A DNA stretch of 64,000 nt from Caecitellus pseudoparvulus (GCA_965644315.1 CBFFRQ010000090.1:1-64000); one strand, 5' to 3'. Shown: positions 4,977-64,000, counted from the first letter of the stretch. The notes: generated by a model from the letters alone, not told the origin. Made by a program: numbers and translations.

Positions 4977-5004
4977 CCTCCGCTGGCCTCAATGAGACAC
5001 GGCC
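4977..5004 (-). repeat. right terminal inverted repeat (GGCCGTGTCTCATTGAG... on minus strand)
   Basis: Inverted match to the window start, at the point where composition returns to host-like high GC. Confidence 0.55.
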
Positions 5005-7050: not shown

Positions 7051-7844
7051 GGCTGTGAGTCAACGCGGAAGGTCGTGCTCGTACCGTTTGAGCGGCAACG
7101 CAGGCACGAGCGCCCGCGAGCAGCGCCACGCTATGCCACGAGGTTGCACTTACTCTTGACTTTGAGCGTCGAAATGGACGTCTGACGGTGTAGTCAAGAG
7201 GAATGATCACAGGTACGCCAGACAGGGCGCAGGTGGCGGGGCCTGCGGAAATTGAGCAGCCACCAAGTCACACCGCACACACGCGATGTGCGCAGCCACA
7301 GGGCTATACAGTCGCAGGCAAAAGGTGAGAAAGGGTATGTTGGCACAGGCAGAGTGCACATAGTTGTCCGTGAGCAGGTGCACGGCATGTGGAATGTGGA
7401 AGGGTACGGAGTGGTTCTTGTGGGGGGTGAGTGAGGCTGAAGAGGGGGTGACCGAGCAGCGGGGCCAGCGGGCCAGGCCACCGCGGCAAGCGGCGGCGGG
7501 CTGCGAGGCACAGGAGTGCAAAAGAAACAATACATCACTCTAACCGTGACGCTGCATCTACTTGCTCATGACAGTTTGCTGTGACTGCGAGCCCTCGCCA
7601 GCCAAACCGTTGCAGCGAGCAGCGTGCGGCAGCGGCGCAGTGCAAGCTGATGTGTGCAGGGGGCAGGAGTCATTAGCAGGCACAGACTCCGTCAAGTTTT
7701 TCCTGGCCACACTCCAAGTTCAGGACACACGAAGTGGCAGCCCTCTACATCGGGCATTTGACACAGCTGGTGCACGCGGGCGGGCAGGTGTCTGGCCGCG
7801 CGCGATCTTGACTGTTCAATTTCCGCAGCGAGCCCCCCACCGCT

Positions 7845-10800
7845 ATGGCAGACAGCGTCGGCCTGGCGCTGGCAGCGCTGATGCTGAACAATGCCCCCGT
7901 GACGACAGAGCACTCCGCGCCGCGTTTCGGGTGGGAGGAGCTGCTGCAGCGCATCGCCGATGAGCTGCACATCCTGGAGGATGGGGAGCCCTTCCTGACG
8001 CCCATTTTTGAGCTGTACGCGAGCCTGCACGACCCGCTGGACGTGGACTTCATGTCCTGCTACGGCTGGCGCAAGCTGTGCCTGGACTCGGTGGGCACGG
8101 CGCACGTGGGCGGGGACAGGGCCAAGGCCGGCGCCATGGCAGACCTGATCTTCCGTGAGATGGCGCAGGACCGCGTGGCAGCGGCGCGGGAGGTGCGCCT
8201 CATCTTCCCCACCTTCCTCCTGGCCCTGGCACGCCTGGGCATGTCGGAGTTGCTGGGGGTTCCCACCAGCGGCAGCCTCACCAGCCGCACCGACTACACG
8301 CCGGCGGACGTGGAGGCCGCCGTGCAACGCATCACAGAGGCCCTGCGAAACGCACGACGCGCGCCCGAGCAGGGCGACGCGGGCGCCCTGCTCACCGCCG
8401 ACGTCGTCAAGGTGTTGCGGCGGGAGCAGCAGATGCTGCAGCGCATCTTCTTCTATTCCTGCGACCGGTCCACCTGCACGCTGTCCTGGGCGGAGGTGTG
8501 CGGCATGGCCAAGGACTTCCACCTGGTGCCGGGGCTGCTGTCCAAGGTGGCGCTGTTCGGCATGTTCCGCGCCATCTCCCCCGAGCGCCACCCCCTCACA
8601 TTCCCCGGCTACATCGAGCTGCTGGGGCGGGTGGCACTGGCCGGCTTCGCAGTGGGCGGGTTGGCAGACCGCTTCCCCGCCCCAGGGGACAAGGTGCGGG
8701 GGTTGCTGGACCGCATCCGCGCCGCGCCGCGCCTTGCGGAATTTGAAGCGGAGGAAGACGCCCGTGGCGGCTCGGCGGGCGCGTCCATGATGACGCCGCA
8801 GCAGCTGGCGGGCATCCGGGTGGAGCGGCGGTCGGCGGCGCTGGGGAACATCCTCCCGGACCTGGCGGAGGAGGTGGATGTGGAGGGCATTGTGGCGCGG
8901 CGCCACAGCACGGTGGGCGCCCTGGCGCGGTCCGCGGGTGGTGCGTCCCGAGGGGCACCCTCTGTGCCCCGCACGCCCTCTGGCCACGCAGATTCCCTGC
9001 CCTCCTTCACATCCTCCCTGCCTGCGGTGCGGGAGGCGAGTTGGGAGGAGGGGGGGGGTGGGCGGCGGTCGCCGCCCCCCCCCTCCGCCGCCGCCCCCGC
9101 TGAGTCACACGAGCAGAGTGCAGACTCCGGGGTGGGGGCGCCGTCTGCGTTGCGGGCCATGGGCGCACTTGCGGGGGGTGGGCCCATCACCATCTCCATG
9201 GCCCAGGCAGTGGACCCGGCCGTGTCCCTGCCCCAGGCGACGCCTGTGTCCCCGGGAGGTGAGGGCGGGGGCGCCACCTCCCCGCCGCCCACCCTCACCA
9301 CGAACACGCCAGGGGCAGGGCGCGCCAGTGGAACAAGTGTTCCGACCCCCACCCGCATTGACGCCACACCTGACCGCCCCCCGACGGTGGTGACGTCAGT
9401 GAGCGAGCCCCCCCCCGGTGGCCGCCGGGAGGGGGGGGTCGGCGAGGACCCCGACACGGGCGGACCCCGCCGTCGCGGCATCTCCTTCACCCCCAGCACC
9501 AAGCCCATGACCGTGGCTGAGTTGCTGGCGGCGGATGAGGAGGGGGGTGGCGGCGGCATCGGCGGCGCCGACCTGACCTTCAACGCAGCAGGCACGGTGA
9601 CTGTGTCCAGGACACGCGGCGCGGGGCGGCGGCTGTTCAGCAGCGGCGCCTCTGTTCTGGATGGCGCCAAGAGTGTTCGGTCTGGGGCGTCGGCAGGGTC
9701 CCGTCGCACGGGGCGCAGTCTGGGCGCTTCCACCACCGGCGGCATCGTGTGGACGAAGCGGTACAAAAAGGGGGGGGAGGGGGATGCGGGGTCCGTGGGG
9801 GGGGGGGTCTTCTGTGGGGGGATGGGGGGGGGGGGACACCGCCCCCTCCACCCCCGCCGCCCTGCCTGCCTGGGCCACCCCCACCGACCGCACCCTGTCC
9901 CGTTCCGACACACGCCTGCTCGCTGCAGCGGTGAAGGGCGCCACGGCCATGGCGGGGGCAGGGGCGGACACCAGCAGTGACGAGGTGCGACGCAGTTGGC
10001 AGAACCAGTGGGCGCCGCCGGACATCGGGGAGCGGCACGCAGCAGCACTGTTGCGCAAGGCGGCGATAGCTGAGAACACGGAGGCGGAACACTCCCGCCG
10101 CGCTGCTGCGTTCAAGAAGTCGCGGCGGCGCGCGGCGGAGCGGGAGGGGGGTGCGGGGGGGGGTGAGGGCGCCATGGGCACCCCTGGCGCCCTGGCAGCT
10201 GCTGTACGCCCCACACTGGAAGGGGTGAAGCCGGGCCACGCGCCCAGCGTGTCAGAGGACATCCTGCAGGGGCTGAAGGGGGAGCTGCGGGGGGAGCTGG
10301 GCGGTGCGGTGCGGCCGGTGTTCTCGTTCTACGTGCGGCTGAACAGCAAGAGCACGCAGTACATCACGTACTCCCAGTTCGCGGGGCTGCTGCGGGACAT
10401 CGGCGTGTTCGACGACTACATCACGCCATCTGCAGTGCACTTGCAGCTGCTGGCCACGACGGCGGCACGGGCATCCCCCGCCGCCCGCCGGGGGGAGTTC
10501 GCCCGCACCGTGCGACTGGCCATGGCGTTCCGGCGGCGGAACCGCCTCATCCGCTCAGCCAGTGCCGAGGCGGGGACGGAGGGGGGGGATGCCGCCCCCA
10601 CCCCCTCTCTCGGCACCCCCGCTGTGCGAGAGGAGTATGGCGCCCTGTCCCCTGCAAACTTGGCAGAGCACGATTTGGGGGGGGGAGGGGGGGGTCGCGC
10701 ACCCCCCCTTTCCGCGGACACTACCCCTCGCGCCGCCGCCCCGCCGGCATCCAGCATCACCAGCACATCAACTGGCGTCGCGGCGGCGTTGCGGGGACAG

Positions 10801-42781: not shown

Positions 42782-45236
42782 TCACCCTGACTTCCGAGTG
42801 GACCGGCGTCGAGGTGACCTGCGCAAGGCAGGCGTGGGTGCGCCCTGTCGACCGGCAGACCTCGCACGCTTGGGCGGCGAGGCGGGCTCGAGGGAGGTGG
42901 GCCCACCTTCCGCCTCAGTTTCGCCTGCCTGAGGCGGGGTGCTGGTCAGGCGCTCCCGTGCGCTGCGCAGCTGCCGCCCGTACAACTCTGCCTTCGCAGC
43001 CGCCCGTGCGCTGGCAGCCTCCTTCGAGAAGTAGCCGTCGTCCACATGCATGACCTGCAGAAACGCCTGGCCGTCAATTTCCGCCCAGAACTTGTTCTCT
43101 TGGCGCAGGCGAGCCTCGTAGCTCATCTCGCTCTCCACGGCGCTGATGATGCGTGCTCGCTCCAGGCTCCACGCCTGCTCAGCGGCAGCCAGCACCTTAT
43201 CGTAGGTGCTGCTCATCATGGCCACGAACAGGTTGATGAGCAGGACACTGGCGACGACGACGTAGATGAGGAGGAGCAGGTTGGCCACGGTGGGGTTGGC
43301 ACTGCCCACGGGGCCCTCCACGTGGAACACGAAGTTCCCCAGCATGGCCTCGAAAGCGGAACGCACCTCCTGGACGAACTGCCCCGAACCGACCTTGTCC
43401 ATGAGCACGAAGGAGGCCTGCGCGAAGCCCATCTGGAACACGAACAGCAGGCACAGGAACTTGATCATGTCGCTGGCCATCATCTCCGCGATCATGATGA
43501 CGAACGGCCCCGTCAGCTGGAACCCCAGCAGGAACCACAGCGCGTAGGCCCAGGCGGCGACACTGGCGGCTGCTGTGGCGGCCTGGGCCAGGTGCCCTGC
43601 CAGTGGGGACACCCCCCCCCACTGGCTCAGGATCGCAGCAGTCAGGACGGAGGTGCTGAACACGGCTGACAGGGCGTTGTCCAGGAAGGCAGCCCCTGAG
43701 GAGGCCCAGTGCTCCGCCCAGCCCCCCGGCCGTCCACGGATCTCCTGCACCTCCCGCCACCCCTTCACCAGGGCGACGAGGAGGATGCATGCGTCACCCA
43801 CGGCGCTGATGGCACACAGCGGCCCCTGTCCCTGGGCGGAGCACTGTGCCCAATCCCGCACCAGCCAGGGCGTCCGTGAGGGCAGCAGGGACCGCAGCAC
43901 CACCGTGGCGGTGAACAGACACATGAATGCACAGTAGAAGCGCAAGCGGCTGTAGAACACCCGCTGGCCGAAGGTCTCCCACTTTTTGGACAGCAGGCGC
44001 TTCACGCGGGGGTGCTCCAGCAGTGCCAGCTGCTGCTGCTGCATGATCACCTCCAGTGCGCTGAGCGGGCGGTCCGTGATGGCCAGCGTGCCAGCGGCCA
44101 ACGCGACACGGTTGCGCAGGATCCAGCCCACTGGGTCTAGCTCCTCCAGGGGGACCTGCAGGCAGTCCACAGGGCCATACCGCCACTGGGATGCCGTGTG
44201 GCGCTGCAGGACATGCTGGAACATGCGCCGGAAGCCCAGGCTGGCAGCCAAGGTGAGGGGAGTCAGGCCAGCCTTGTTGAGTCGCCCCTGCAGGGGGCAG
44301 GAGGGGCTGCCGTGCCGCTCTTGCCACAGGTCGCAGATGAAGTCGTACATGTCGGGCTGGTCGTGCAGCACCATGAAGTGCAGGGCGGTGTTGCCGTGCG
44401 AGTCAGTGCAGTCCAGGTCAGCGCCCCACTCCTGCACCAGGTAACGCACCAGCTCGGGCTGATTGGTGCAGGCGGCGAAGAGCAGGGGCAACTCGCCGTA
44501 GTAGCAGCCCTGCCCGCTCTCCAAGAAGCGGGCCGCCGAGAAGAAAGACCCCACCGCCCGACTGGCCAGGAGGGGATTAGGCGCTGAGCCAGCCGCCGTG
44601 CCCCGAGAAGCATCTGCCAGCGCCTGCGACCGCTCGAGCAGCATGCGCACGCTCTCCAAGTCACCATTCACAATGGCAATGTGCAGGCAGTTCTCGCCCA
44701 GGTACTCTTTCCCACTGTACTCCTGCAGCACAGTGGAGGGGTTGGTGTCGAGGATGAACTCTGCCAGCGCTTTGTGAGCCGGCGCGTGGTACCTGCGCCG
44801 AGCACGCGAGAGTAACGGATTTAAGCATGCGGCTGCAGTATGAGAAGCGCAGGTCAACTTACAGAAAGCAGAGGTGCAAGGGTGTGTCCCCTACGGCACC
44901 ACGCTGGTGCAGTGCATCCGGGTCTGCGGTGGGCAAGAAGCGTGCGGCTTTTGAACGGCTAAGGGACACTTTGCATGGGCACCCAGGTGGCACCAAGCAC
45001 GAAGAAGGCAAGCAAGCCCAGTCGACCACACACTACCAGCACGGACCTCGTTGTAGCAGGAGTTTCAGCTCCTCCAGATCTCCCTGGTGCACTGCATGCC
45101 ACACAGTGCCGTGCCGGTGAGCAGCCTCTGTCTGGTCCTCCACTGTCTGCTCCAGTTGCACGCCGTTGCCTGTCGCAGCTTTGTCCCCAAGCACCGCCTG
45201 GACGCAAGTAGACAGAAAGCTCTGCAGTGCATCCAT
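42782..45236 (-). CDS. TRPV-like cation channel (ankyrin repeats + 6TM + TRP-box-like helix); 3 exons
   Basis: YLGENCLHIAIVN, YYGELPLLFAACTNQ, DSHGNTALH, GLTPLTLAA, WRYGPV, LLSKKWETFG, GFQLTGPFVIMI, LLINLFVAMMSSTY and WSLERARII. Upstream exons include RGAVGDTPLHLCFL. Confidence 0.92.
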
Positions 45237-50998: not shown

Positions 50999-53900
50999 CT
51001 ACTCCGCCCCCCCCCCTTCACCGGAGGCAGAGCGTGAGGAGCTCGTCACGGCAGCTGGCAGAGTGATGACTTGGCTCAAGTCGCTGCTGCCCGTGTCCAC
51101 CCCTGCTGCACTGATGCACGGCACTGCGTCGACATCTGACGCAAGTTGCTGGGCGCTGACAGGGTGTGGGTCACCCCACGTCGCTTCTTGGGAAGCCGCC
51201 ACTGCCGGAGTGGCATCTTGCCACAGGCCGTGCTTCTGGCACAGGCGTTTGACAGAGGCCAGGATGACATCGGCAGTGGCCGGCTTCGTCAGCACGCTGT
51301 GTGCGCCCGCCATCCGGTACCGCGCCACATCGTCACCCAGCGCGTTCCCCGTCAACCCCACAAACACCAACCGACCACCCCCTCCCTCACCTGACCCCGC
51401 CAGGCGCCCCTCACCCACCAGCGCGCGAGCCAGACTCGGCCCATCCAGCAGCGGCATGGACATGTCACACACCACCGCATGCAGGGGGTCGTGTGTGCCG
51501 GCTTGCAGGGCTTGCAGGGCATCCTGCCCATCGGGCGCTTGGAAGACGGTGGCCCCGCGGCGTGTGAGCTGCCTGGCGAGTTGCTGCCTGAGGGCACGGG
51601 AGTCCTCGACGAGGAGGAGGCGGAGGGGGGGCTGGGCAGCTTCAGCCGCCAAAGCACCCGTCTTGCTGCGGTGTGAGTGCAGCCCACGGCTGGACATGTG
51701 CAGGCCCAGCGCAGTGCTGTCCATGCGATCCAGGTCGATCAAACACGCCTCCGACCCGATGCTGGGAATGGAGCTGGAAAGGCGTCCGGGGATGAAGGCC
51801 TTGCTTCCAAGCCCATGGGATAGGCTGCTCCGAGAGCCCACTGCAGAGGACAAGGCCTGCAGATATGGCACTCCCTCGTCGGCACTGCGGTGAGACACGG
51901 CTTCTGTTTCGCGGGTCAAGCGCACAGGCAGTGCGATGGTGAAGGTGCACCCCTTCCCACGACCCCCACTCACCACGCTCAAATCCCCACCCTGCGCCTG
52001 CAACAGCTCACGCATCAACCACAGGCCCAGACCCGTGCCCTGCTGCTGCATGCCTGACCGCAGGCGGGAGAAGGGTTTGAAGAGGGAGGCGATTTCATCG
52101 GCGCTCATGCCACGTCCGAAGTCGGTGACGTGCACGAGCAAGTCGAACACCGTCCCTTCTTCAACACGGGCTGAAGTCCGCGCAGAGGCAGGCGGAGCAG
52201 TGGATGAAAACGAGGCAGACGGCCCACGTGTCTGGGGAGGGGAGCGAGGGTTGGGCAGGTGGGCATGGCCAGCAGCAGGTCGCACACCCAGCCCCACCAC
52301 CACCGCATGCCCATCCTCAGCCTGACTCCCCTCGCTCCCCCCATACTTCACCGCGTTGCTCATCAAATTCAACACCGCCTGCTTCAACGTCGTGAAACCC
52401 ACCAGCGTCTCCACGTGCAACGGCGGGAAATCACCCACACGACCCCCGCCCCACCCCACCAACGCCGCCAGCTCGCTCGACACACGCTGCTCCAGCCGCG
52501 GCACCCCATGGTCCAGCGACTCTGCCAGTTGAGGTGCCATGTCGCACACGTGTGCCACGGCAGTGGTGGCGTTGTACGAGTGGGTGGGTGCGGAGCCCTC
52601 ACCCACCCGGCTCCGGCGCTTGGCGTTGGTGGTCTTCAGGAACATGAGCATGTTGTCCAGGATGCCGCTCAGCATGGTGAGGGGCTGGTTCACCTTCTGG
52701 GCCGTGGACTGCACAGCTGCATACGCCTGTGCCACCCGGGCGTTGCGGTGCATGGCCGCGGCAGCGGAGGGCGCACCGGATGCCGCGACGAGGAGGTCCT
52801 CCACGTCCTCTTCGAGGAGGTTGCCCATGGAGAGGATGGCGACGTTGATGGGTGAGCGGCATTCGTGTGAGAGCCAGCGCAGCATGGCTTCGGAGCGTGC
52901 GGCAAGGTCTCGCGCCCGGCGCGTTTGCTCGGCGGCAATGGCACTGAGGCGGACAAAGCTGGTCATGATGTTCAGCGCCATGAACACTGTACTCACAAGC
53001 AGCATCAGGGTTGTGTGCCAGTCGCGCACATGCACACCTGTCGTGCCCTCAACTCGGCACTCTGCCCAAGAGTCCCGCACTTCCCGCTGAAAGGCGGGGT
53101 GAGGTCCCGACAAGCCTCCTTCAGCGTTACGCTCACAGATGAGGACGGAGAAGTCAAGGGCAACACATGCCGCCGTGCTGGCTGCAGCTAGCGCAATGGC
53201 GAGGGTCAGCAGCAGCTGGAAGCGCCCCCCTTGGGCGGCAAGGCGAGCCCGCACAGCAGGCAGGGGCACGGGGCTGCGGTACCAATCGTGAGGGCCGGGC
53301 AAGCCAGTTTGCGAATGATTGCACTGGGGTGTCGCCTGGCTACAACGCAGCTTGCATGAGTACGGCCCGCCACCCCCAGAGCACGTCCAGGCCATGATGG
53401 TTGCGATGAGAATGGCAGGTGCAACGAGTCCCAGGAATGCCGCGTCCATGGCCAGCCCAGCCCTCAGGTCAAACACAGCCGCAAGTAGGGGGCCAACGTT
53501 GAGGGTGAGCACCAAACCCGCCTGCACTGCCACTGCCGGTAGCTGGGAGAACCCCACAGGCGAAAGGTGGAGCACGACGGACCGTGTCACGAAGTCCCAC
53601 GATGCGGTGACAAGCAGCCCCAGCACCGCAAGGGCACTTGTGGGTGGAATGCGCTGCCCGTCCCCGTACGTCACGTTGGAGAAGATGGAGGCAGCGCCCG
53701 GCGCAAGGAACAGCACGCTCAAGTTCTGCAGGTGCAGCCCCGATGTAGAAATGGCAAGGCGATGGGCGTGTGCCTCAGCGCCGCCAGACGCAGCGCCAAC
53801 GGAACGCATCCACCCAAACAGGACGCAGCCAAAGAGCACCACCCAGATGCCTTGCGACATGAACCACATGGTGATGGAGGAGGCGGAGTCTGTCACCTCT

Positions 53901-54238
53901 CTCGTGCTCATGCAGCCATGGTTTTCACATTGCAGCCACTGTGCCACAAAAACCGCCCCGGTGCAAAGGCCGCTGGTGATGAGCAAAAACGTGGGCACAT
54001 CCCACTCAGAGAAGCAACAGCAGTGCCTTCCCGTGCATGGTGTCTCGCCGCCACAACAGCTTCTCATCCCACCTGCACTTTGACGCTGCTGAATGCTGCC
54101 GCCGCTTTGAGCCGACGAAGAGCGCGTCCTTTGCGAGGTGTGTCTGTGCTTCAGTGCACCGGACAACAACGCGCCCCCTGAGGCCTCATCCTGCAGGACA
54201 GCAATGCAAGGGTATTCCATATTCATGGGGTGTATCAT
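50999..54238 (-). CDS. membrane-bound hybrid histidine kinase HK1 (multi-TM sensor-HisKA-HATPase_c-REC); start may be a downstream Met
   Basis: H-box WLSHECRSP, N-box NLMSNAVKY, G1 VTDFGRGM, F-box LFKPF, G2 GTGLGL. REC motifs LLVEDS..VCDMSMP..GLTGN..TKP. Confidence 0.93.
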   Translation of the reverse strand: MIHPMNMEYPCIAVLQDEASGGALLSGALKHRHTSQRTRSSSAQSGGSIQQRQSAGGMRSCCGGETPCTGRHCCCFSEWDVPTFLLITSGLCTGAVFVAQWLQCENHGCMSTREVTDSASSITMWFMSQGIWVVLFGCVLFGWMRSVGAASGGAEAHAHRLAISTSGLHLQNLSVLFLAPGAASIFSNVTYGDGQRIPPTSALAVLGLLVTASWDFVTRSVVLHLSPVGFSQLPAVAVQAGLVLTLNVGPLLAAVFDLRAGLAMDAAFLGLVAPAILIATIMAWTCSGGGGPYSCKLRCSQATPQCNHSQTGLPGPHDWYRSPVPLPAVRARLAAQGGRFQLLLTLAIALAAASTAACVALDFSVLICERNAEGGLSGPHPAFQREVRDSWAECRVEGTTGVHVRDWHTTLMLLVSTVFMALNIMTSFVRLSAIAAEQTRRARDLAARSEAMLRWLSHECRSPINVAILSMGNLLEEDVEDLLVAASGAPSAAAAMHRNARVAQAYAAVQSTAQKVNQPLTMLSGILDNMLMFLKTTNAKRRSRVGEGSAPTHSYNATTAVAHVCDMAPQLAESLDHGVPRLEQRVSSELAALVGWGGGRVGDFPPLHVETLVGFTTLKQAVLNLMSNAVKYGGSEGSQAEDGHAVVVGLGVRPAAGHAHLPNPRSPPQTRGPSASFSSTAPPASARTSARVEEGTVFDLLVHVTDFGRGMSADEIASLFKPFSRLRSGMQQQGTGLGLWLMRELLQAQGGDLSVVSGGRGKGCTFTIALPVRLTRETEAVSHRSADEGVPYLQALSSAVGSRSSLSHGLGSKAFIPGRLSSSIPSIGSEACLIDLDRMDSTALGLHMSSRGLHSHRSKTGALAAEAAQPPLRLLLVEDSRALRQQLARQLTRRGATVFQAPDGQDALQALQAGTHDPLHAVVCDMSMPLLDGPSLARALVGEGRLAGSGEGGGGRLVFVGLTGNALGDDVARYRMAGAHSVLTKPATADVILASVKRLCQKHGLWQDATPAVAASQEATWGDPHPVSAQQLASDVDAVPCISAAGVDTGSSDLSQVITLPAAVTSSSRSASGEGGGAE
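51273..51646. repeat. 374-nt receiver-domain block nearly identical to 54755-55128
   Basis: Direct comparison shows only scattered substitutions. Confidence 0.9.
51918..52141. repeat. ~200-nt ATP-lid (G1-F-G2) block nearly identical at 55571-55794 and 58990-59186, and partially at 63239-63313
   Basis: Direct base-by-base comparison of the four kinase genes. Confidence 0.9.
52275..52897. repeat. 623-nt HisKA-to-N-box block nearly identical to 56015-56637
   Basis: Direct comparison shows only scattered substitutions. Confidence 0.9.
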
Positions 54239-54693
54239 GGTGGCCTGGCCTGGCTGAGAGCTGTTCTCAGCAGTGCATACGGTTCCTTTTGGTTGCGGCA
54301 GTCTCCACTCACAGCTGGTCCCACAGCGACGTGCGCTGGAGGTCTTGAGGGTGCAGCCATGGCAGGGCCAGGGACAAGGGCTGGCACTGGAGAAAGAGGG
54401 CGGCGAGAAGACTCAACTCCGGCGATCTCCACACAGCTCGCGCTGGCTGTTCAAATCGCCAGGGGTGTGCCCCAGTCGATTTCCGCTTGGATCCCAATAA
54501 TGCCGCACTCTCCGCCTCACGGCAGGGGGTCAGAGTTTGCCTCCTCCAAGCGTCGAGTACCTTCGGTGCAAGCTGAACGCTAGCGCACTTTGCATTCCCG
54601 TGCGTGCACCTTGTCCCGAAACGTCGTTGATTGCATTTGTAGGGTGTGTGGGTTTGACAGGCAGCCGGAGCTGCGCCGAAGCCAGGCGCTGGA

Positions 54694-57600
54694 TCAGCGG
54701 GCCTGCCCGGGCAGGCGCTGGAGGAGCCGCCGCACCTCAGACAATACAGTATCAGCAGTGGCCGGCTTCGTCAGCACGCTGTGTGCGCCCGCCATCCGGT
54801 ACCGCGCCACGTCGTCACCCAGCGCGTTCCCCGTCAACCCCACAAACACCAACCGACCACCCCCTCCCTCACCTGACCCCGCCAGGCGCCCCTCACCCAC
54901 CAGCGCACGAGCCAGGCTCGGCCCATCCAGCAGCGGCATGGACATGTCACACACCACCGCATGCAGGGGGTCGTGTGTGCCGGCTTGCAGGGCTTGCAGG
55001 GCATCCTGCCCATCGGGCGCTTGGAAGACGGTGGCCCCGCGGCGTGTGAGTTGCCTGGCGAGTTGCTGCCTGAGGGCACGGGAGTCCTCGACGAGGAGGA
55101 GGCGGAGGGGGGGGTGGGCAGCTTCAGCAGCTTCTGCTTTCCCCAACGTTTGCCTGCGATGGTGCTTAGGCGGCTGGTGCTTGCCATCACCTGCCTCGTG
55201 GCCCTTTCGTGGGGTGGGGGTGCTGCCTGTGCCGGCCACGCCTGCATGGCCAGAGTCCACTGACCGAGTGCCTTCTGATGAAAGCACTTCATCGGTCCGC
55301 ACGCACTCAAGGAATGTATCCAGGGGGGCACCGCTACTGCGGGTTTGTGAGGTGGGCATGGCGATGGAAGAGGCAAAGTCAGAACGCACGGTCGGCACGC
55401 TGCGAAGGGAAGTCGTGCCAAAGCCCTCGCGAAGCGAACCCGTTTGTGGAGACGGCGCCGATGGCCTGCCCAGCTCATCACTCAAGCCAACAGCGTGCCT
55501 AGGCCTGAACAAGGATTCTTCAAGCAATGAAGACGGCTGCTGGCTGTCAGTGTCTGCTGTCTCCGCTACAAAGCGCACAGGCAGTGCGATGGTGAAGGTG
55601 CACCCCTTCCCACGACCCCCACTCACCACGCTCAAATCCCCACCCTGCGCCTGCAACAGCTCACGCATCAACCACAGGCCCAGACCCGTGCCCTGCTGCT
55701 GCATGCCTGACCGCAGGCGGGAGAAGGGTTTGAAGAGGGAGGCGATTTCATCGGCGCTCATGCCACGTCCGAAGTCGGTGACGTGCACGAGCAAATCGTG
55801 GACTGATGCTCGAAGAACAGCGCGCACTTCAGGGGATTCGTCGCGGCCAGCAGAGGCGCCGACTGCAGCCTGGGTGCTAGAAACAGACTCGATGGAAACG
55901 GAGCCATCTGCTTGGGAGTCCAGTTTCAAATGTGGCGCCTGTGATGCGCGCAAGACCAGAGAACGCGTGCGAGCCATGCGCGCCCGATTCAGTGGAGCCC
56001 TGCCTGGGTCAATGGCAGGTCGCACACCCAGCCCCACCACCACCGCGTGCCCATCCTCAGCCTGACTCCCCTCGCTCCCCCCATACTTCACCGCGTTGCT
56101 CATCAAATTCAACACCGCCTGCTTCAACGTCGTGAAACCCACCAGCGTCTCCACGTGCAACGGCGGGAAATCACCCACACGACCCCCGCCCCACCCCACC
56201 AACGCCGCCAGCTCGCTCGACACACGCTGCTCCAGCCGCGGCACCCCATGGTCCAGCGACTCTGCCAGCTGAGGTGCCATGTCGCACACGTGTGCCACGG
56301 CAGTGGTGGCGTTGTACGAGTGCGTGGGTGCAGAGCCCTCACCCACCCGGCTCCGGCGCTTGGCGTTGGTGGTCTTCAGGAACATGAGCATGTTGTCCAG
56401 GATGCCGCTCAGCATGGTGAGGGGCTGGTTCACCTTCTGGGCCGTGGACTGCACAGCTGCATACGCCTGTGCCACCCGGGCGTTGCGGTGCATGGCCGCG
56501 GCAGCGGTGGGCGCACCGGACGCCGCGACGAGGAGGTCCTCCACGTCCTCTTCGAGGAGGTTGCCCATGGAGAGGATGGCGACGTTGATGGGTGAGCGGC
56601 ATTCGTGTGAGAGCCAGCGCAGCATGGCTTCGGAGCGCTGTGCTTCGCTTTTCCTGCGCTTGGAGCTCACCAAAGCGGCGGTGCTGATGCGGACGATAAG
56701 AATGAGCACATTCATGAACACTGCCAGCGTACATGTGCCAAGGATGAGCACGTGCTCCAGTCCCCCCTTGCTGCGCAGCTCAAAGGCAGGCCCAGGCTTG
56801 CTTGTGCCAAGGAAGCTGCCATCTTCACATTGTCGCAGCGTGCGCACAGCGTCGGGGTGCCAGCCAGGAGTGAAGGAGGCTGGGAGAGACTCGCCCCACA
56901 TGCAGGCGGCGTCCTCTACGATGAGCGCACAAGCAATGACGAGGAGGACGGCAGGAACACCCACCGTTCCCAGGAATACGACGTAAAACTTGCTGGAGTG
57001 CGCGCTGAGATCTTTCCGCACCTCCACACGGGGGGTGGGTGACTTGAACCATGCCCCTGGCACGAGAGAAGCGTAGCTGTACTCTGCAGACGTCCGGATG
57101 GCAGCTTCCATCTCCCGCCCATTGCGCCAGCAAAAGGAGCACGTCCAGCCAGGGCAGATCCAGGGCAGGAAGATGGAGGCGTACATGATGGGCACGGTGA
57201 TGACAATGAACGCAGAGCCACCCAGCAGACTTCCACGAGAGTCAATGAAGAAGGACAAGACAGGGACTATGCCAAGGAAGATGGCAATGGAGGCAAGGGG
57301 CAGGAAACTCCACAGCTGGCTAAAGTTGAGTGGGGCCACCTGCATGACGACGCTGCGCAGACCAAAGTCCAAGGAGGCGCTGGAGATGGCACCCAGCAGT
57401 GCCAGGCCCAGTTCTGTGCTCAGTGCAAACCGAAAGGAGCCCAGGATGAGCGTGGGGAACAGGATGGTGCAGCTGATCCAGAGGATGAGGAGTGTGTGCT
57501 GGAGGTGGGCCCACAGCGTGGACTCTGTGACGCGGCGCCCGTGCGAGGTGAGGGTGGAGCTGTGCTTGGAGTTCAGAATAAGGCCCCCCAGCAGCATGGT

Positions 57601-58113
57601 GTACAGGGCTGCGACGGGGGCAGCGATGACGACCCACAGCATGTGGACCGCTTCAATGGACCCTGATCCGCCGTGGCCACACCCGCCCTCGGGGCATAGA
57701 AACAGCTGCGCGATGCAGATGATGTGCAGGCACACCAGGCACACCACCACACACACTGCAGGCCAGTCCCAGAACGAGTGGAAGAGGCACGGTATCCCAG
57801 GCTGGCGGGCCCCGCCGCGCCCCGCCGCGCCACCCCTCTCAGCCCTGTCTGAACCATCACTCACTCCGAGGCCGGCGGAGGAGGTCTGAGAGGGGTCCGT
57901 AGAGAAGCTCACACTGGCTGAGCCATGCGCGCTGAAGCTCTCGGCACGAAGGGATCCAGACAGGATCGGCCCTTGGTGCAGCTGCGGTACGAAGGGCGGC
58001 AGGCAGTGTGAGGAGTGTGCGGGAGGTCGCTGCGAAGCGCCGTGTGCTGCCTGCATCTCGCACGGCAGAAGACAGGAGCCCACGCCACGAGACAGCCTGC
58101 ACAGGGCATGCAC
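54694..58113 (-). CDS. membrane-bound hybrid histidine kinase HK2
   Basis: Same architecture and motifs as HK1. Intronless 1139-codon ORF. Confidence 0.93.
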   Translation of the reverse strand: MHALCRLSRGVGSCLLPCEMQAAHGASQRPPAHSSHCLPPFVPQLHQGPILSGSLRAESFSAHGSASVSFSTDPSQTSSAGLGVSDGSDRAERGGAAGRGGARQPGIPCLFHSFWDWPAVCVVVCLVCLHIICIAQLFLCPEGGCGHGGSGSIEAVHMLWVVIAAPVAALYTMLLGGLILNSKHSSTLTSHGRRVTESTLWAHLQHTLLILWISCTILFPTLILGSFRFALSTELGLALLGAISSASLDFGLRSVVMQVAPLNFSQLWSFLPLASIAIFLGIVPVLSFFIDSRGSLLGGSAFIVITVPIMYASIFLPWICPGWTCSFCWRNGREMEAAIRTSAEYSYASLVPGAWFKSPTPRVEVRKDLSAHSSKFYVVFLGTVGVPAVLLVIACALIVEDAACMWGESLPASFTPGWHPDAVRTLRQCEDGSFLGTSKPGPAFELRSKGGLEHVLILGTCTLAVFMNVLILIVRISTAALVSSKRRKSEAQRSEAMLRWLSHECRSPINVAILSMGNLLEEDVEDLLVAASGAPTAAAAMHRNARVAQAYAAVQSTAQKVNQPLTMLSGILDNMLMFLKTTNAKRRSRVGEGSAPTHSYNATTAVAHVCDMAPQLAESLDHGVPRLEQRVSSELAALVGWGGGRVGDFPPLHVETLVGFTTLKQAVLNLMSNAVKYGGSEGSQAEDGHAVVVGLGVRPAIDPGRAPLNRARMARTRSLVLRASQAPHLKLDSQADGSVSIESVSSTQAAVGASAGRDESPEVRAVLRASVHDLLVHVTDFGRGMSADEIASLFKPFSRLRSGMQQQGTGLGLWLMRELLQAQGGDLSVVSGGRGKGCTFTIALPVRFVAETADTDSQQPSSLLEESLFRPRHAVGLSDELGRPSAPSPQTGSLREGFGTTSLRSVPTVRSDFASSIAMPTSQTRSSGAPLDTFLECVRTDEVLSSEGTRSVDSGHAGVAGTGSTPTPRKGHEAGDGKHQPPKHHRRQTLGKAEAAEAAHPPLRLLLVEDSRALRQQLARQLTRRGATVFQAPDGQDALQALQAGTHDPLHAVVCDMSMPLLDGPSLARALVGEGRLAGSGEGGGGRLVFVGLTGNALGDDVARYRMAGAHSVLTKPATADTVLSEVRRLLQRLPGQAR

Positions 58114-58340
58114 TTACATAGCGAGTGCCCCCAGACATGGCGCCCTCAGCACTGCCCCCTTCCGCCGAGGCCTTGCGTTGCGCGTCGGTGATGCCAGCTG
58201 AAAGAAACCGCCCCGCTCGGCGCATGCAGCGGGGTGGGCTGGGAGGAGTGTCGGGCCGACAGCCGCTAGTGCTGGCCTGGCGAATTCGCTGTCACATGAA
58301 TTGCCAGCAGCGGTGCTGCTTGTCTTGGCGCCGCTGGGTT

Positions 58341-61244
58341 TTATTTCTGCAGCAGTCTTCGAAGCTCAGCCAGCACCTGCTCAGCGGTGGACGGCTTGGT
58401 GAGCACGGCATCAGCGCCAGCCTCACGGAAGGCACGCACGTCCTCCTCCAACGCCTGGCCTGTCAGGCCGAGGAAGCGGACAGGCTGGGCGGGGTTCTGT
58501 TGGGCCCGCATGGCCCTTGCCACTTGCAGGCCGTCCATGATGGGCATGGACATGTCGCAGACCACAGCGTCGAATGCAGCATCCGGAGCGGACCATCGCG
58601 CCATGGCAGCCTCTCCGTCCGCGGCAGTGGTCACACGGAGTCCCTGGCGCCTCAAGCGGCGGGACATCTGGTCTCGCTGGGGCTTGGAGTCATCCACCAG
58701 CAAGACGTGGCAGCCGACCAGCCCCTCGCGCGGTGCCGCCGCTGCCCCGTGGGGCGGCAGAGGAGAGGCACGTGCGTTGCCGGGGCCGGGATGCGCATCT
58801 GGCGCCCCACTGTCACCTTTAGGCAGAGAGTCGCCCTTGCTCATCGTGGACCCGAACCTTGACAGTTCTTGGGACATGGCTTTCTCTTCAGGGGTCTGTA
58901 TGGGAATGCTGGAATTCCCTGAAGCTGAGACCATTGTCCGGCGCAGGGCATGCAGGCAGCGCAGACTGGTGCGGAATGGAAACGACGCAGTGAAGGTGCA
59001 CCCCTTCCCACGACCCCCACTCACCACGCTCAAATCCCCACCCTGCGCCTGCAACAGCTCACGCATCAACCACAGGCCCAGACCCGTGCCCTGCTGCTGC
59101 ATGCCTGACCGCAGGCGGGAGAAGGGTTTGAAGAGGGAGGCGATTTCATCGGCGCTCATGCCACGTCCGAAGTCGGTGACGTGCACCTTCATAAACACCA
59201 GTGCGCTCTCTGTCGTTGGCTTGCTGTCCATGGGGGCACTGGCCAGGGGCGGCGCGGGCGAGGGCGGTGCGGGCTTGGCGGCGCCCAGCGGCGCAACAGC
59301 GACGCCCGTGTGCTCGCCGTCGGAGTTGCTGCTCATCACTTCACCGACGATGGCATCCAGGCCTAGACTCGCTGCCCGACTGGAGTCGCGGATGTGCCCT
59401 CGCCCCCTCGAAGTCGCCACGGAGGTGTCTGGAGAGAGACCTAGCTCCACCAGTACGTGGGCCCGCGCGGCATCATCGTCACCGCCAGTGCTGCCATACT
59501 TGATGGCATTGCTGAGCAAATTCAGGAGAACTTGTTGGAGCGTGACGGTGTTCACGCTGGAGCGGCCCGTGAGCAGAAGGCAGGCAGAATCCCTGCCACT
59601 GGACAGATGCATACTCAGCGGGGCACTCCAGCCCGACCCGGGCATCCGCACCTCAAGAGAGAGCTCAGGGTGGGTGTAGCCCATGGCCACCCCAACTTGT
59701 CCTGCCAGGTCAAGCGAGTACGTCGTGGCGCGGCCCAGGTCCAGGCGCTCCACAAGGTCCTGGCCGCTTCCTTCGGGGCGTCGCCTGTGCTTCAAGTACG
59801 CCAGCATGTTGTCCAGCACGCCCACCAGCATGTTCAGTGGCGGCTGCAGCTGCAGGACTGCCGCGCGGGATGCCCGGGCCTGGTCAATGGAGGCTTCTGC
59901 GAGCCGTGACACGTCGTCGCGGCCGAGGTCTGAGCAAGCGCGCTTCAGCCGCCGCAGTCGCCGCAGCAGCGGGTCGAAGTCCTCCTCCGCCACGTTCTGG
60001 ACGGACAGGAGGGCCACACTTACTGGGGACCGACATTCATGGGACAACCAACGCAGCATGGCCGTGCTGACAGTTGACTGCTCTTGCAGCACAGAGGAAG
60101 TCAAGCTGTTGGCCAGCCACGTCCATGCCAACACGTACACCAACAACATGACGAAGTCACTGGACACATGCATACTTGTGAAGGTCATGTGCCAGGGTTC
60201 CCTTGTGCCCAGTCGGGCGCACTCCACCGCCCGAGCATCGGTAACCAGGCCCGAATCTGGCTGAAGCGATGAAAGGTCGGAGTCTGGCAGGCGCTCTGAG
60301 AAACAGCTTGCGACTCCGATGGTGGCACCGCTGTGCAGGGCCGCCATTACCATGTTCAGTCCGAACACAGGAAGCACAGAGGCTCGAAGGATTTTGCGGG
60401 CATCCTGGCGAAGAGTGGTGCCAAGGGCTCGCTCCAGGTGCTGCACTTCGCCTTCCATGTACCACTTGACGTGCGGGGCGATGTTGCCCCACGTTGGCAC
60501 AGCGTCGGGGCACGTGAAGCTCTGCACGGTGATCGCCACGGCCCCTGTCACAATGAGGCAGAGGAAGGCAATGTTGCTCACAAAGTCTACCCTGAAGTCC
60601 AGCACGAAGGTCAGCAGAGGGCAGATGCTGCCGTGCAGCAGCACGAGGCCCTGGACGATCAAACCTGTGGTGTGCGAGACGTAGCCCGCCCCGAAGGGAA
60701 TGACGATGCCGCGGAGCAAGACCTCCACGGAGGCTGCAGTGGACAGCCCCGACATGCTCTGGCTGATGATGAAGGGCGAGTGCCGCGCGCCTCCAAAGCG
60801 CCCTGGCAGGATGGACCATGCAACCTGCAGCAGCACCAGCACAGCGATCATGCGGGCACAGGCAAGACGTGAAATGAAGACCGTCGCAGCCGAGAGCCGC
60901 TGGGGCATACTGTTTTTCTTTGCTGCGCTGTTGGCGACGACCTGGCGACCCCCCGCTCTGTGTGAAGTGGCGTCGGCGGCAATTGATGCGCTTCGAGCTT
61001 GGGCAAGCCAGAGAACCAGCACGATGACCGTCGCGTGCAGTCGGAACGAGAAGGCGGACGCTGAGAGAGGTGGTGGACTTCTGGCTATGTCCAGGGTCTC
61101 ATGGGACACGCGCAAGGCGAAGGCCAGGCCCACGCAAACTGCCGCGGCAGCCCACACAAAGAGAGCCGGTACATCTGGCCTGCCACACCAACACGGCCCA
61201 CAGCGCAGGCAGCAGGGAGCGGACGGCTGCCTTCTACTGGCCAT
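58341..61244 (-). CDS. membrane-bound hybrid histidine kinase HK3
   Basis: WLSHECRSP, NLLSNAIKY, VTDFGRGM and GTGLGL. REC motifs LLVDDS..VCDMSMP..TKP. Confidence 0.93.
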   Translation of the reverse strand: MASRRQPSAPCCLRCGPCWCGRPDVPALFVWAAAAVCVGLAFALRVSHETLDIARSPPPLSASAFSFRLHATVIVLVLWLAQARSASIAADATSHRAGGRQVVANSAAKKNSMPQRLSAATVFISRLACARMIAVLVLLQVAWSILPGRFGGARHSPFIISQSMSGLSTAASVEVLLRGIVIPFGAGYVSHTTGLIVQGLVLLHGSICPLLTFVLDFRVDFVSNIAFLCLIVTGAVAITVQSFTCPDAVPTWGNIAPHVKWYMEGEVQHLERALGTTLRQDARKILRASVLPVFGLNMVMAALHSGATIGVASCFSERLPDSDLSSLQPDSGLVTDARAVECARLGTREPWHMTFTSMHVSSDFVMLLVYVLAWTWLANSLTSSVLQEQSTVSTAMLRWLSHECRSPVSVALLSVQNVAEEDFDPLLRRLRRLKRACSDLGRDDVSRLAEASIDQARASRAAVLQLQPPLNMLVGVLDNMLAYLKHRRRPEGSGQDLVERLDLGRATTYSLDLAGQVGVAMGYTHPELSLEVRMPGSGWSAPLSMHLSSGRDSACLLLTGRSSVNTVTLQQVLLNLLSNAIKYGSTGGDDDAARAHVLVELGLSPDTSVATSRGRGHIRDSSRAASLGLDAIVGEVMSSNSDGEHTGVAVAPLGAAKPAPPSPAPPLASAPMDSKPTTESALVFMKVHVTDFGRGMSADEIASLFKPFSRLRSGMQQQGTGLGLWLMRELLQAQGGDLSVVSGGRGKGCTFTASFPFRTSLRCLHALRRTMVSASGNSSIPIQTPEEKAMSQELSRFGSTMSKGDSLPKGDSGAPDAHPGPGNARASPLPPHGAAAAPREGLVGCHVLLVDDSKPQRDQMSRRLRRQGLRVTTAADGEAAMARWSAPDAAFDAVVCDMSMPIMDGLQVARAMRAQQNPAQPVRFLGLTGQALEEDVRAFREAGADAVLTKPSTAEQVLAELRRLLQK

Positions 61245-61864
61245 GGCCTCTACAAACTTGGAAGTCTACACAGGAGGTGGAGCGTGGCTTCCAACGAGCC
61301 GTGTGGGGCCACAGCAACGTCTTCGATGTGGCGGAGGGGGCGTGCACCTCGTTTGCCGGCTCAGGACTGGCCACGTCAGCGCAAGCGGCAAAACAGCCAC
61401 GTGCGAGGACCCAAAGCCCCCTGCATGGCCCAAGTTCGTCGAGGGCTTCCGTGTCTCGCTGCCTTGCAGAATATGCGCGGCGTAAACGAGTGCAAGCTGC
61501 GGCGGAAAATGGCCCGAGGAGGGGCTGACATCGGGCGGCGTTACAAGCGCGCCTGCCGCTGGAAGTGACAGTTCCAAAGCTGCGCGTGGCGCCACGCGAA
61601 GCTCCCAGTTGTTTTCCCTCGCAGCGCGCGAATAGGCGCCCATCGACGCATCGTGCACATACCCCACATGCTACCGTGAGCAGCTTCATTCTAGCCGCGC
61701 ATGTTTCTTTGGAACGCACTTCCAGAGTGCGCAACCTGCCTGTCTGCCGCGGCGTTGCATTCGTGTAACTCCGACATCACAACGCAGTCACTCAGCAAGA
61801 GCCACTGCAGGCAATTCATGCGCTCTGGGACGGTTCAAATCGCCCCCATGAACCCTGGCTGCTG

Positions 61865-64000
61865 TCATCCATCCTCGGCATGGAGTTGCTTCGCAACTTC
61901 ATGCACTGCGAGAAGCATGTCTTCAGCCCGGACTGGCTTGGTGAGCACCTCATCAGCACCGGCAGCTTGAAACACCTCCAGGTCGATGTCCAAGGCGTTG
62001 CCGGTCAGCCCGATGATGGGAAGCCGGCATAGAGACCCTGGAGGGCGCTGTAAGGCCTGTACTATTGGTGCGCTTTCTGTTGTGCTGGCGGAGCCAGCCA
62101 GAGGAGCGGTGCCAAGGTACACTGGCGCAGTAAGGGTGGCTTCAGCAGTGCTTGCCCAACGAGGAGGCGGCGGTGTGTGCCTGCCCTCTCGGCCAGTCTC
62201 GTACAGCGAACTTGTGCGTGAGCCCCGCCCGTGTGCAGTCTCATGGGGGCCAGTGGCCGCCGTGGAATCATCGATGAGTTGGAGTGAAGCTGGCGCTGCT
62301 GCTACTGCGGGGGTTGGGACTGCCTTGCTTGGAAGCTGGAGCTGCACCTGGCTCGCCGCAGGGGGTTCACTGGCGCCTGACGTCACGTCAGACGCCTCGT
62401 GCACAGAGGTCTCAGGCGCACATTGCTTCGCGTCGCCGGAAGCGCCTGCTTGGTGTGGCGCTGAGTGACTGCGGGTGATGATGGCTTGTAGTGGCGGGCC
62501 ACCCCGCATTGATGTATCTGGGCTGGTAGGCTGCGTAGGGTCATGCCGACGCTGGCCTTTGGAGGACCGCCCCGAGGCTGACCCTTGCTCTGCACCACCA
62601 ATGGGGCCGTGGTGCGACGGCGCAGACCCCGCAGCGCTTGCTGTGCCACTAACGCTGCGCAAGCCAGATGACGTGGGAGGCGGCGGCTGGGCAAAGAAGG
62701 TGCCATCTGCCTCAAGCTGCCGCACGGCTTCAACGAGTGCCGGGCCGTCCATGACAGGCATGGACATGTCACAAATCATGCACTGCAGCGGCGTGAGGAG
62801 GTTGTGCAGCGTCGCCAAGGCTTCCTCCCCATCCTTCGCCGTTGCAACGGTGCAGCCCAGGCGTTTCAACGCCCGAGCCATTTGCGTGCGCAGGGGCTTG
62901 GAGTCATCCACGAGGAGCACATGCATGGACAGCCGGGAGCGGCTGACAAACGAACGCAAGTTGCTATGGCTGCGTCTGGCTGGAGGAATGCTGCCCGATC
63001 CCGAGCTCGCACCTCCAGTAGGCACAACTGGCGGAGCACCAGGAGGAGATGCAGCCACCGACACAACAGCACGGGCTGGAAGTCCTGCACTGTGTGGGGC
63101 GAGTGCAGCCGATGGCAGCGCGCACGCGCTCAGTACTGCTGCTGCCGCCTCGGGTGACATCAGCACAGGAAAAGCCAGAGTGAAAGCGCAGCCCTGGTCC
63201 CGGCCGGGGGAAGCCACAGTCAAGTTGCCGCCCTGGCTCTGCAACAGCTCGCGCATCAACCACAGGCCCAGACCAGTGCCCTGCTGCTGCATGCCTGACC
63301 GCAGGCGGGAGAAAGGGCGAAACAGGCTGTCCATCTCATCTTCGCTCATCCCTCGGCCGTGGTCTGCGAGGGTGATCTTCATAAGGTACAGGGGCGTGCT
63401 GGAATGGGCACCTCGCGGGGAGTGCAGCCAGTGGCTGGTCAGCTGCTCCCTCGCCTCGTGCGGGTGCACCGAGACACTCAAGTCCAACAGCACCTGCTTG
63501 CGCCCATCAGTAGACTCGCAGAGGCCATACTTTAGCGAGTTTGTAAACAAGTTCACGAGGACTTGTTTCAGCGTCGCAGCGGTCACAGAGGAGCGGCACT
63601 CCAGCCCTGCGCCACAAAGTCCGTGCAGGGCTTGGGGGCCAGCCACAGTGGCAACGTCAGCACTGGTGGAAACCTGAATGTGCACGCTCCCGTCAAACTG
63701 GGGTGACTCAGGGGCGTCGTAGGTCATGGATAGGTGCCCTGTCAGCTCGAAGAAGTCGCGTAGAGCTGCGGACACATCGAGAAGTGCTGGGGCCAGCCCT
63801 CGGCCGGAACCCCCTCCCACCTGCTGCTTTGCTCGTAAATACACGAGCATGTTGTCCAGTACACCACTGAGCATGGTGAGGGGCTGCTCAAGCGCTGCTA
63901 CGTCCTCGCTGAGGGACTGCTCCAGGCGTGCGAGGGAAGCCGCAGCGCCGGCTCCTGCCTGGTCCCCCGTCTTGCTGCTGGCGGTGCTCATGGAGGCTTT
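61865..64000 (-). CDS. hybrid histidine kinase HK4, 5' part outside the window; receiver domain split by a long insertion
   Basis: QPLTMLSGVLDNML (HisKA helix 2), NLFTNSLKY, LADHGRGM and GTGLGL. REC motifs LLVDDS..ICDMSMP, then ~200 aa low-complexity sequence, then PIIGLTGNA..TKP. Confidence 0.9.
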   Translation of the reverse strand, partial: KASMSTASSKTGDQAGAGAAASLARLEQSLSEDVAALEQPLTMLSGVLDNMLVYLRAKQQVGGGSGRGLAPALLDVSAALRDFFELTGHLSMTYDAPESPQFDGSVHIQVSTSADVATVAGPQALHGLCGAGLECRSSVTAATLKQVLVNLFTNSLKYGLCESTDGRKQVLLDLSVSVHPHEAREQLTSHWLHSPRGAHSSTPLYLMKITLADHGRGMSEDEMDSLFRPFSRLRSGMQQQGTGLGLWLMRELLQSQGGNLTVASPGRDQGCAFTLAFPVLMSPEAAAAVLSACALPSAALAPHSAGLPARAVVSVAASPPGAPPVVPTGGASSGSGSIPPARRSHSNLRSFVSRSRLSMHVLLVDDSKPLRTQMARALKRLGCTVATAKDGEEALATLHNLLTPLQCMICDMSMPVMDGPALVEAVRQLEADGTFFAQPPPPTSSGLRSVSGTASAAGSAPSHHGPIGGAEQGSASGRSSKGQRRHDPTQPTSPDTSMRGGPPLQAIITRSHSAPHQAGASGDAKQCAPETSVHEASDVTSGASEPPAASQVQLQLPSKAVPTPAVAAAPASLQLIDDSTAATGPHETAHGRGSRTSSLYETGREGRHTPPPPRWASTAEATLTAPVYLGTAPLAGSASTTESAPIVQALQRPPGSLCRLPIIGLTGNALDIDLEVFQAAGADEVLTKPVRAEDMLLAVHEVAKQLHAEDG

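Follow-up and report, generated by a model that had tools for sequence, protein, structure and literature searches.

We analysed a stretch of 64 kb at the start of contig C90, which is 126 kb long, in the Caecitellus pseudoparvulus genome (30.6 Mb, 215 contigs); we refer to this stretch as the window. Positions 50999-64000 contain four long uninterrupted open reading frames (ORFs), arranged head to tail and all on the minus strand, as are their features given below; each of them encodes a hybrid histidine kinase. HK1 (50999-54238, 1079 residues) is complete in a single ORF and comprises an eight-helix sensor, a DHp domain, a CA domain and a receiver. HK2 (54694-58056) is also complete, with 1120 residues counted from the first ATG at 58056 and a frame that stays open up to 58113, as is HK3 (58341-61244, 967 residues). 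The 3' two thirds of HK4 (61865-64000) lie in the window; the gene ends at C90:65518 and encodes 1217 residues from its first ATG. Outside the window are HK5 (C90:65937-69350, plus strand), which is divergent from HK4, and HK6 (C90:76980-80750, plus strand), with three unrelated ORFs between the two. The cluster consists of six genes over 51-81 kb of C90, with reading frames that are open for 967-1257 residues and with all catalytic motifs intact.

A preliminary description of the window had reported a head-to-tail array of at least four intronless, same-strand hybrid kinases running off the window end. The ORFs and their Pfam domains confirm this arrangement, and extension past position 64000 brought the total to six with HK5 and HK6. 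The genes also appear intronless as described: the ORFs are long and single, in agreement with the absence of splice joints from the contigs of four sequencing runs aligned to 52500-58499.

In each of the four window kinases, Pfam identifies HATPase_c (57-65 bits; cut-off 26.4) and Response_reg (46-74 bits), and the CA domain matches the solved kinase domains of ZraS, WalK/YycG, EnvZ and ETR1. The cores carry the H-box SHECRSP, the N-box LNLMSNAVKYG, the G1 box D-x-G-R-G-M, the F-box FKPFSR and the G2 box GTGLGL. The receivers contain the D-D motif as LLVEDS or LLVDDS, the phospho-acceptor Asp in CDMSMP, the Thr in GLTG and the Lys in LTKP. Codons for the phospho-acceptor His are located at 52865-52867 in HK1 (His458), 56605-56607 in HK2, 60039-60041 in HK3 and, outside the window, at C90:64211-64213 in HK4; those for the receiver Asp are at 51464-51466 in HK1 (Asp925), 54946-54948 in HK2, 58554-58556 in HK3 and 62768-62770 in HK4. 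The S-H-E-x-R-x-P motif around the His is invariant among the family members found (26 of 26). All elements that had been listed for these proteins, namely a multi-pass N-terminus, the phospho-His, the ATP boxes and the receiver Asp, are thereby present, the phospho-His as judged from its motif.

Low-complexity inserts occur within the CA domain and within the receiver. In HK4, HK5 and HK6 the receiver is interrupted by a long insert (about 190 residues in HK4) but is complete. The HK6 receiver is complete in a single, continuous frame, which rules out a frameshift or an intron at this position.

The membrane sensor domain

The N-terminus of each window kinase has six to eight hydrophobic segments. 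The HK1 sensor (residues 81-449; 52892-53998) is composed of an N-terminal transmembrane helix (TM0) and a seven-helix bundle (TM1 to TM7), in which the TM7 helix extends without a break in the direction of the H-box. The HK2 sensor (approximately residues 90-475; 56632-57789) shares 26-28% identity with that of HK1, and the HK3 sensor spans approximately residues 25-393 (60066-61172). For six sensors, Pfam returned no family at E-values up to 5, including Bac_rhodopsin, 7TMR-DISM_7TM and 5TM-5TMR_LYT, and a feature search of the ESM Atlas with the sensor gave uninformative scores (at most 0.84).

The domain is also rare. A profile built from 18 sensors and searched against 1.84 billion protein representatives (E-values up to 0.001) recovered only 16 relatives. 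Eight of these were newly found: four have HATPase_c, two of them together with a receiver, and the other four are fragment-like, with 228-566 residues and no Pfam match. The remaining eight comprise seven proteins with HATPase_c and a receiver, and P0001, a chimeric gene model with HATPase_c only. The only name attached to any relative is Symbiodinium sp. KB8; the contigs in question are 1-4 kb long and must be contamination. The longer relatives lie in eukaryotic gene contexts. From these sequence comparisons the sensor appears to be an undescribed eight-helix domain.

An AlphaFold model of the sensor shows eight long helices (predicted local distance difference test (pLDDT) 73, predicted template-modelling score (pTM) 0.76). 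In a structural search with VIA-align the best matches were microbial rhodopsins, at Z-scores of 10.5-12.4 where the tool regards values below about 13 as ambiguous for helical bundles. The root-mean-square deviations were 3.8-5 Å, and the alignments span 207-264 residues over all seven helices with 5-12% identity to the rhodopsins. All of the top 27 matches (Z 10.9-12.4) are microbial rhodopsins or a rhodopsin-derived design; eight-helix enzyme rhodopsins are among the matches, and G-protein-coupled receptors (GPCRs) come next, at a Z of about 10. These borderline scores suggest that the sensor may be a seven-helix bundle of the rhodopsin/GPCR arrangement preceded by TM0, which does not imply homology. 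A lysine in TM7 is absent from all 16 members, and retinal binding is therefore excluded; the lack of this lysine rules out that the sensor is a rhodopsin.

Family-wide conservation is seen at R219, D257, R259, C368 and C394. The Cys pair, together with charged residues, is located at the predicted membrane boundary, and C368 and C394 fall in the TM6-TM7 loop (53057-53137 in HK1), each being present in 15 of 16 members. Given a cytoplasmic kinase and eight helices, this loop would point outward and is probably extracellular. At the other end of TM7, the H-box lies about 25-30 residues past the membrane in the model, and neither HAMP nor PAS was found between TM7 and DHp.

Family history and gene conversion

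The protein-coding neighbours of the kinases in the window are eukaryotic (a gamma-tubulin complex protein, a RabGAP-TBC protein, the RNA polymerase III subunit Rpc82 and an ankyrin/TRP-PKD channel), and the GC content is 61-75% across most of the window. Genes for light-harvesting proteins were not found in the genome, and the best named matches of HSP90 are oomycetes and diatoms (73-75%), with no entry named Cafeteria among its best 120 matches. The genome also contains an 18S rRNA gene. Judged by these sequences, the host appears to be a non-photosynthetic stramenopile.

Six-frame searches of the whole genome yielded about 23 kinase genes, several of the dispersed ones being seen as partial loci with incomplete N-termini; at least 17 of the approximately 23 have a multi-pass N-terminus. 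Sorted by H-box, nine are SHECRSP kinases, eight are SHEVRVP kinases and six have other motifs. The SHECRSP set comprises the six genes on C90 and those at C19:348 kb, C77:33 kb and C89:725 kb. In a tree of the cores, the SHECRSP kinases and their metagenome relatives form one clade (support 99), the SHEVRVP kinases form its sister clade (support 100), and both are separate from the sampled bacterial hybrid kinases. The suspicion that the window harbours part of an expanded family is borne out by these counts, and the family is neither limited to four copies nor a described group with a known sensor: there are nine genes, and their sensor matches no known domain. The SHEVRVP proteins are membrane hybrid kinases as well, with a multi-pass sensor that is unrelated to that of the window kinases; profile-profile comparison detected no relationship between the two.

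Within the SHECRSP set, the sensor tree places HK1 and HK2 as sisters (support 97) and pairs HK4 with HK5 (support 84). Near-identical metagenome counterparts exist for HK6, C89:725 kb and C19:348 kb, and for HK6 and C89:725 kb a second species also contains orthologues at a greater distance. On a metagenome contig of that species, the HK6 orthologue (P0009) is located 9.6 kb from P0122, a 2060-residue kinase that groups with HK4 and HK5; an M16 peptidase gene separates the two. Since HK6-type and HK4/5-type genes are linked in both species, part of the cluster linkage predates the species split. The paralogous sensors are 19-28% identical and separated by branch lengths of 1.2-2.4 changes per site, and they are old paralogues and not the product of a recent burst. 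Comparison of orthologues from related species gives 49-68% identity for the cores and 32-39% for the sensors, a gradient that is ordinary for sensor kinases. The family as a whole appears to be confined to a narrow set of heterotrophic flagellates among the marine stramenopiles.

On this background of old divergence, the cores of neighbouring genes share tracts of nearly identical DNA. Tract A (HK1 residues 448-655, covering DHp and the N-box half of CA; 52275-52897) is 623 nucleotides (nt) long and 99.0% identical to HK2 56015-56637. Tract B (residues 699-774, with the G1, F and G2 boxes; 51918-52145) has 228 nt at 99.6% identity to HK2 55571-55798, and tract C (residues 864-990, the receiver; 51269-51649) has 381 nt at 98.2% identity to HK2 54751-55131. 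The inner 197 nt of tract B (HK1 51939-52135) are 100% identical to both HK2 55592-55788 and HK3 58990-59186; outside this 197-nt copy, the HK3 core is 30-60% identical to HK1 and HK2. Within the HK1/HK2 tracts nearly all synonymous third positions are identical. Outside them synonymous sites are saturated, as is the DNA of the HK1 and HK2 sensors, and neither the flanking DNA nor the disordered inserts that separate the tracts can be aligned. The tract borders coincide with folded domains, while sensors and disordered inserts are skipped, and the result is a set of mosaic genes.

Contigs of independent samples break at the tract borders, and their loose ends run into flanking sequence that is specific to HK1, HK3 or HK4. 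Because these independent contigs continue into the flanks of individual genes, the identical blocks are not an assembly artefact. Linked paralogues of the SHEVRVP subfamily share tracts in the same way (C48:70 kb with C48:30 kb, and C68:281 kb with C68:286 kb; 1605 nt at 96.3% and 358 nt at 97.8%). Near-identical tracts were found only between genes on the same contig, and none between dispersed copies. Such sharing marks short-tract gene conversion between linked paralogues, which is confined to stretches kept similar enough for pairing by selection. The near-identity of the neighbours' cores is thus the consequence of recent gene conversion limited to folded domains. The earlier contrast of diverged sensors and conserved cores holds for the sensors, given their 19-28% identity; the near-identity of the cores is due in part to conversion.

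The protein CAE7713201.1, assigned to Symbiodinium sp. KB8 and encoded on a 4.26-kb contig, is a chimera in which residues 1-444 correspond to the HK2 sensor (56653-58056) and residues 444-893 to HK1 (52058-53464). The contig is a contaminant, and the chimera reflects either an assembly in which the two genes were collapsed or an HK2/HK1 recombinant carried by that strain. In one contig from a metagenome, position 55108 is joined to 53876 through 40 other letters.

The kinase genes are under purifying selection, as 33 of the 40 strain differences on HK2 and HK3 are synonymous and seven are non-synonymous, and as HK6 is 98.5% identical over 1254 residues to a protein of an independent metagenome assembly that ends at the same stop. 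Contigs of one metatranscriptome RNA-seq run match parts of HK1, HK2 and HK3 and include the first 46-62 nt past the stop codons of HK3 and HK2, a hint that the genes are transcribed. In Cafeteria burkhardae, the set of genes whose expression rises in stationary phase is enriched for histidine kinase domains and receivers (PMC7852580); this is a different heterotrophic stramenopile, and it serves as an analogy only for the genes described here.

Relay partners and genomic surroundings

Eukaryotic two-component kinases are typically hybrid and relay through an HPt protein. Among the scanned window ORFs there is no HPt or stand-alone receiver gene, and the genome-wide HPt and receiver family matches that fall inside the window are the kinases' own receivers, in keeping with what had been noted for the window. 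Elsewhere in the genome, the six-frame search recovered one HPt candidate at C19:272469-272627, which carries the H-x-x-K-G motif in the sequence SEAHALKGTASNL. It has no match among PDB sequences. We consider this gene a probable HPt protein.

Three proteins have a receiver and no kinase domain. One, on C43, combines PAS with a receiver (946 residues); the second, at C56:270 kb, has a receiver and an N-terminus of unknown type (618 residues); the third, on C62, combines a receiver with IQ motifs. The search for relay partners that the preliminary description had suggested therefore yielded three receiver-only proteins, and for HPt a single sub-threshold candidate. The C62 protein (C62:488 kb) has at least 1323 residues and contains, besides the receiver and the IQ calmodulin-binding motifs, a weak alpha/beta-hydrolase match; it would be an unusual response-regulator output.

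One of the three ORFs between HK5 and HK6 (C90:73960-75018, plus strand) is a gene of the histidine-phosphatase superfamily (His_Phos_1, 121 bits), and a gene of the same family adjoins the HK6 orthologue in an independent metagenome contig. The superfamily includes the SixA-type phosphohistidine phosphatases. The gene near HK6 could be a relay phosphatase, or its position could be coincidental.

Two other parts of the window are worth recording. An ORF at 42782-44857 (minus strand) encodes N-terminal ankyrin repeats and a C-terminal ion-channel domain of the PKD/TRP type. Positions 1-8000 have a GC content of 52-61%, against 64-75% elsewhere in the window, and contain ORFs of 553-620 residues, one of them with weak AAA-ATPase matches; this may be a foreign or mobile segment.

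Interpretation and comparison with known systems

We propose, with a probability of roughly 0.7 for the reading as a whole including relay and conversion, that the window kinases belong to a cluster of six intronless genes for membrane hybrid histidine kinases with eight-helix sensors. In such a system, a stimulus perceived within or at the membrane bundle would shift TM7 and hence the DHp helices, and this shift would change the autophosphorylation of the His. The phosphate would then pass from the His to the Asp of the kinase's own receiver, from there to the only probable HPt protein, encoded at about 272 kb on C19, and finally to any one of the three receiver-only proteins. Each of the neighbouring genes would retain its individual sensor and disordered linkers, with DHp, CA and the receiver homogenised by repeated conversions over short tracts, and the homogenised cores would keep all copies compatible with one shared downstream partner. 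The stimulus would most likely be a small ligand, either extracellular or soluble in the membrane, or else the ionic or redox state. Bacterial 7TM sensor kinases that bind small ligands set a precedent, namely BtsS with pyruvate (PMC10653868) and LadS/RetS (PMC4866733).

Several observations weigh against this reading or its parts. The Pfam HisKA match reaches 13.9 bits, under the cut-off of 26.9, and the phospho-His call therefore rests on the S-H-E-x-R-x-P motif. Only 18 sequences underlie the sensor model, which is a single model of medium confidence with low-confidence loops. Its Z-scores fall in the ambiguous range, Foldseek found no match to it in the PDB at E-values up to 0.001 (best 0.6-0.7), and a fold search of the Atlas returned template-modelling scores (TM-scores) of at most 0.45, to unrelated families. 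The HPt candidate stays below the Pfam cut-off of 24.6, with 23.5 bits in the six-frame search and 21.1 bits for the ORF (E-value 3.8e-4); its single-sequence AlphaFold model is unusable (pLDDT 42), and a word-based homologue search retrieved only a fragment that is 99% identical. As to transcription, contigs of DNA runs cover the same parts of the genes as those of the RNA run, and the intergenic stretches are uncovered in all runs.

The preliminary description had gone further and likened the locus to a chemoreceptor repertoire with a role like that of GPCR clusters in animals. In such a repertoire the paralogues would be diversifying ligand receptors, each for a different external chemical, with diversifying selection on the sensors. 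The clustering of genes, the strongly different sensors on a common core, the resemblance of the sensor model to 7TM receptor bundles and the conserved Cys pair in a predicted outer loop all fit this idea, as does, in a different organism, the enrichment of histidine kinase domains among the stationary-phase genes of Cafeteria burkhardae (PMC7852580). We nevertheless find it unlikely. With nine members, the family is small compared with chemoreceptor or immune-receptor families, and the age of the paralogues, together with the linkage kept in a related species, leaves no recent burst of birth and death. The gradient from sensor to core is found equally between orthologues, as is ordinary for sensor kinases, and the striking constancy of the cores is owed to gene conversion. 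What stands of the variable receptor and constant core is an expanded, lineage-specific family of the membrane receptor type; its nine members, old paralogues and conversion-shaped cores argue against a repertoire. The locus also cautions that a constant core with a variable sensor should not be taken as evidence for diversifying selection.

The kinases could instead respond to a physical cue or to the condition of the membrane (osmotic strength, ionic strength, membrane tension, or redox via the Cys pair) in the manner of Sln1-type osmosensors, which we hold to be about equally unlikely. The sensor is mostly buried in the membrane and has no extracellular ligand-binding domain, TM7 is joined directly to the DHp helix, and the Cys pair and charged residues sit at the predicted membrane boundary, as such a function would lead one to expect. 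On the other hand, nine highly divergent sensors exceed the need of one physical cue, and the present data do not separate this function from ligand sensing. Light sensors of the histidine-kinase-rhodopsin type, in which a retinal-binding rhodopsin is fused to kinase and receiver, would have the same order of parts (7TM, kinase, receiver) and would account for the best structural matches, including the eight-helix enzyme rhodopsins, but are highly improbable given the missing TM7 lysine in 16 of 16 members, the lack of a Bac_rhodopsin match even at E-values up to 5 and the 5-12% identity to rhodopsins. That the genes are non-functional, either as decaying duplicates or with the identical blocks produced by assembly or polishing, is just as improbable and largely refuted: the sub-threshold HisKA match, the low-complexity inserts in CA and receiver and the HK2/HK1 chimera in the public record could be taken that way, and they are outweighed by the open frames with every catalytic motif, the excess of synonymous strain differences, the conservation of HK6 up to its stop, and the independent contigs that share the blocks and then enter the flanks of individual genes.

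Returning to the cluster of membrane hybrid kinases with eight-helix sensors, we speculate that the domain might be a true non-retinal 7TM receptor, related to rhodopsins and GPCRs by descent or by convergence, that binds external small molecules and signals via the attached His-Asp relay instead of G proteins. We regard this possibility as doubtful. If true, it would add to the eukaryotic 7TM receptors a class of receptor kinase that had not been recognised before, and the paralogues would provide a bacterivorous flagellate with a small panel of chemical senses, all wired to one HPt protein by conversion.

Heterotrophic marine flagellates are major grazers of bacteria, and to our knowledge almost nothing has been established about how they sense prey, starvation or chemistry; nor do we know of two-component receptors in animals. 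The family is a concrete candidate for flagellate sensing, and with input and output in one intronless polypeptide it should be easy to express. Should the membrane domain bind ligands, the family would be the equivalent in eukaryotes of the bacterial 7TM sensor kinases and would offer another route than coupling through G proteins.

Multi-pass hybrid kinases are already known in protists. Expansions without a recognised sensor have been described in Naegleria gruberi (24 kinases), Tetrahymena, Paramecium, Capsaspora and Thecamonas (PMC6324907, PMC10463195), and they resemble the window family in their hybrid layout, several N-terminal hydrophobic helices, lack of a recognised sensor, lineage-specific occurrence and presumed HPt relay. 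However, these surveys include neither this organism nor any bicosoecid-like flagellate, and the window family has its SHECRSP H-box and its own eight-helix sensor; it is set apart from the surveyed groups by their descriptions and not by their sequences. The family would therefore be described as eukaryotic, non-retinal hybrid kinases with an eight-helix sensor and an H-box of their own.

Histidine kinase rhodopsins occur in the green algae Chlamydomonas and Ostreococcus (PMC6798134, PMC12558739) and have the same order of 7TM domain, kinase and receiver. The enzyme rhodopsins 7d7q and 7pl9 also combine a seven-helix bundle and an extra N-terminal helix with a cytoplasmic signalling enzyme, and rhodopsins of these kinds are the best structural matches of the sensor model (Z 11-12.4). 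In contrast to both, the window family has neither the retinal lysine nor sequence similarity to rhodopsins, and it is not a member of that group. The bacterial 7TM sensor kinases, such as LadS/RetS and other 7TMR-DISM hybrids (PMC4866733) and the LytS-type BtsS, which binds pyruvate (PMC10653868), likewise use a seven-helix membrane domain as the input of a histidine kinase. The window kinases differ from them in that they are eukaryotic, lack a Pfam match to the bacterial membrane domains and the periplasmic DISMED2, and have cores in a clade separate from the sampled bacterial kinases. An ethylene-receptor type is excluded by eight helices instead of three and by the absence of GAF, the likeness to ETR1 being confined to the CA domain.

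In the multistep phosphorelays of fungi and plants, signals pass along Sln1-Ypd1-Ssk1/Skn7 and AHK-AHP-ARR chains, respectively. The present genome has a similar composition: hybrid kinases are numerous, response regulators are few, and HPt proteins are scarcer still, with a single candidate here. In contrast to these relays, the candidate regulators have no recognised DNA-binding output, and the HPt protein is only probable. The tracts in the cores resemble known cases of concerted evolution by short-tract conversion, in that linked paralogues share sharply bounded segments that are 98-100% identical down to their synonymous sites. Here, however, the tracts match folded domains and skip the inserts and sensors, and such mosaic conversion would be a natural example of how a signalling interface can be kept uniform while the inputs drift apart.

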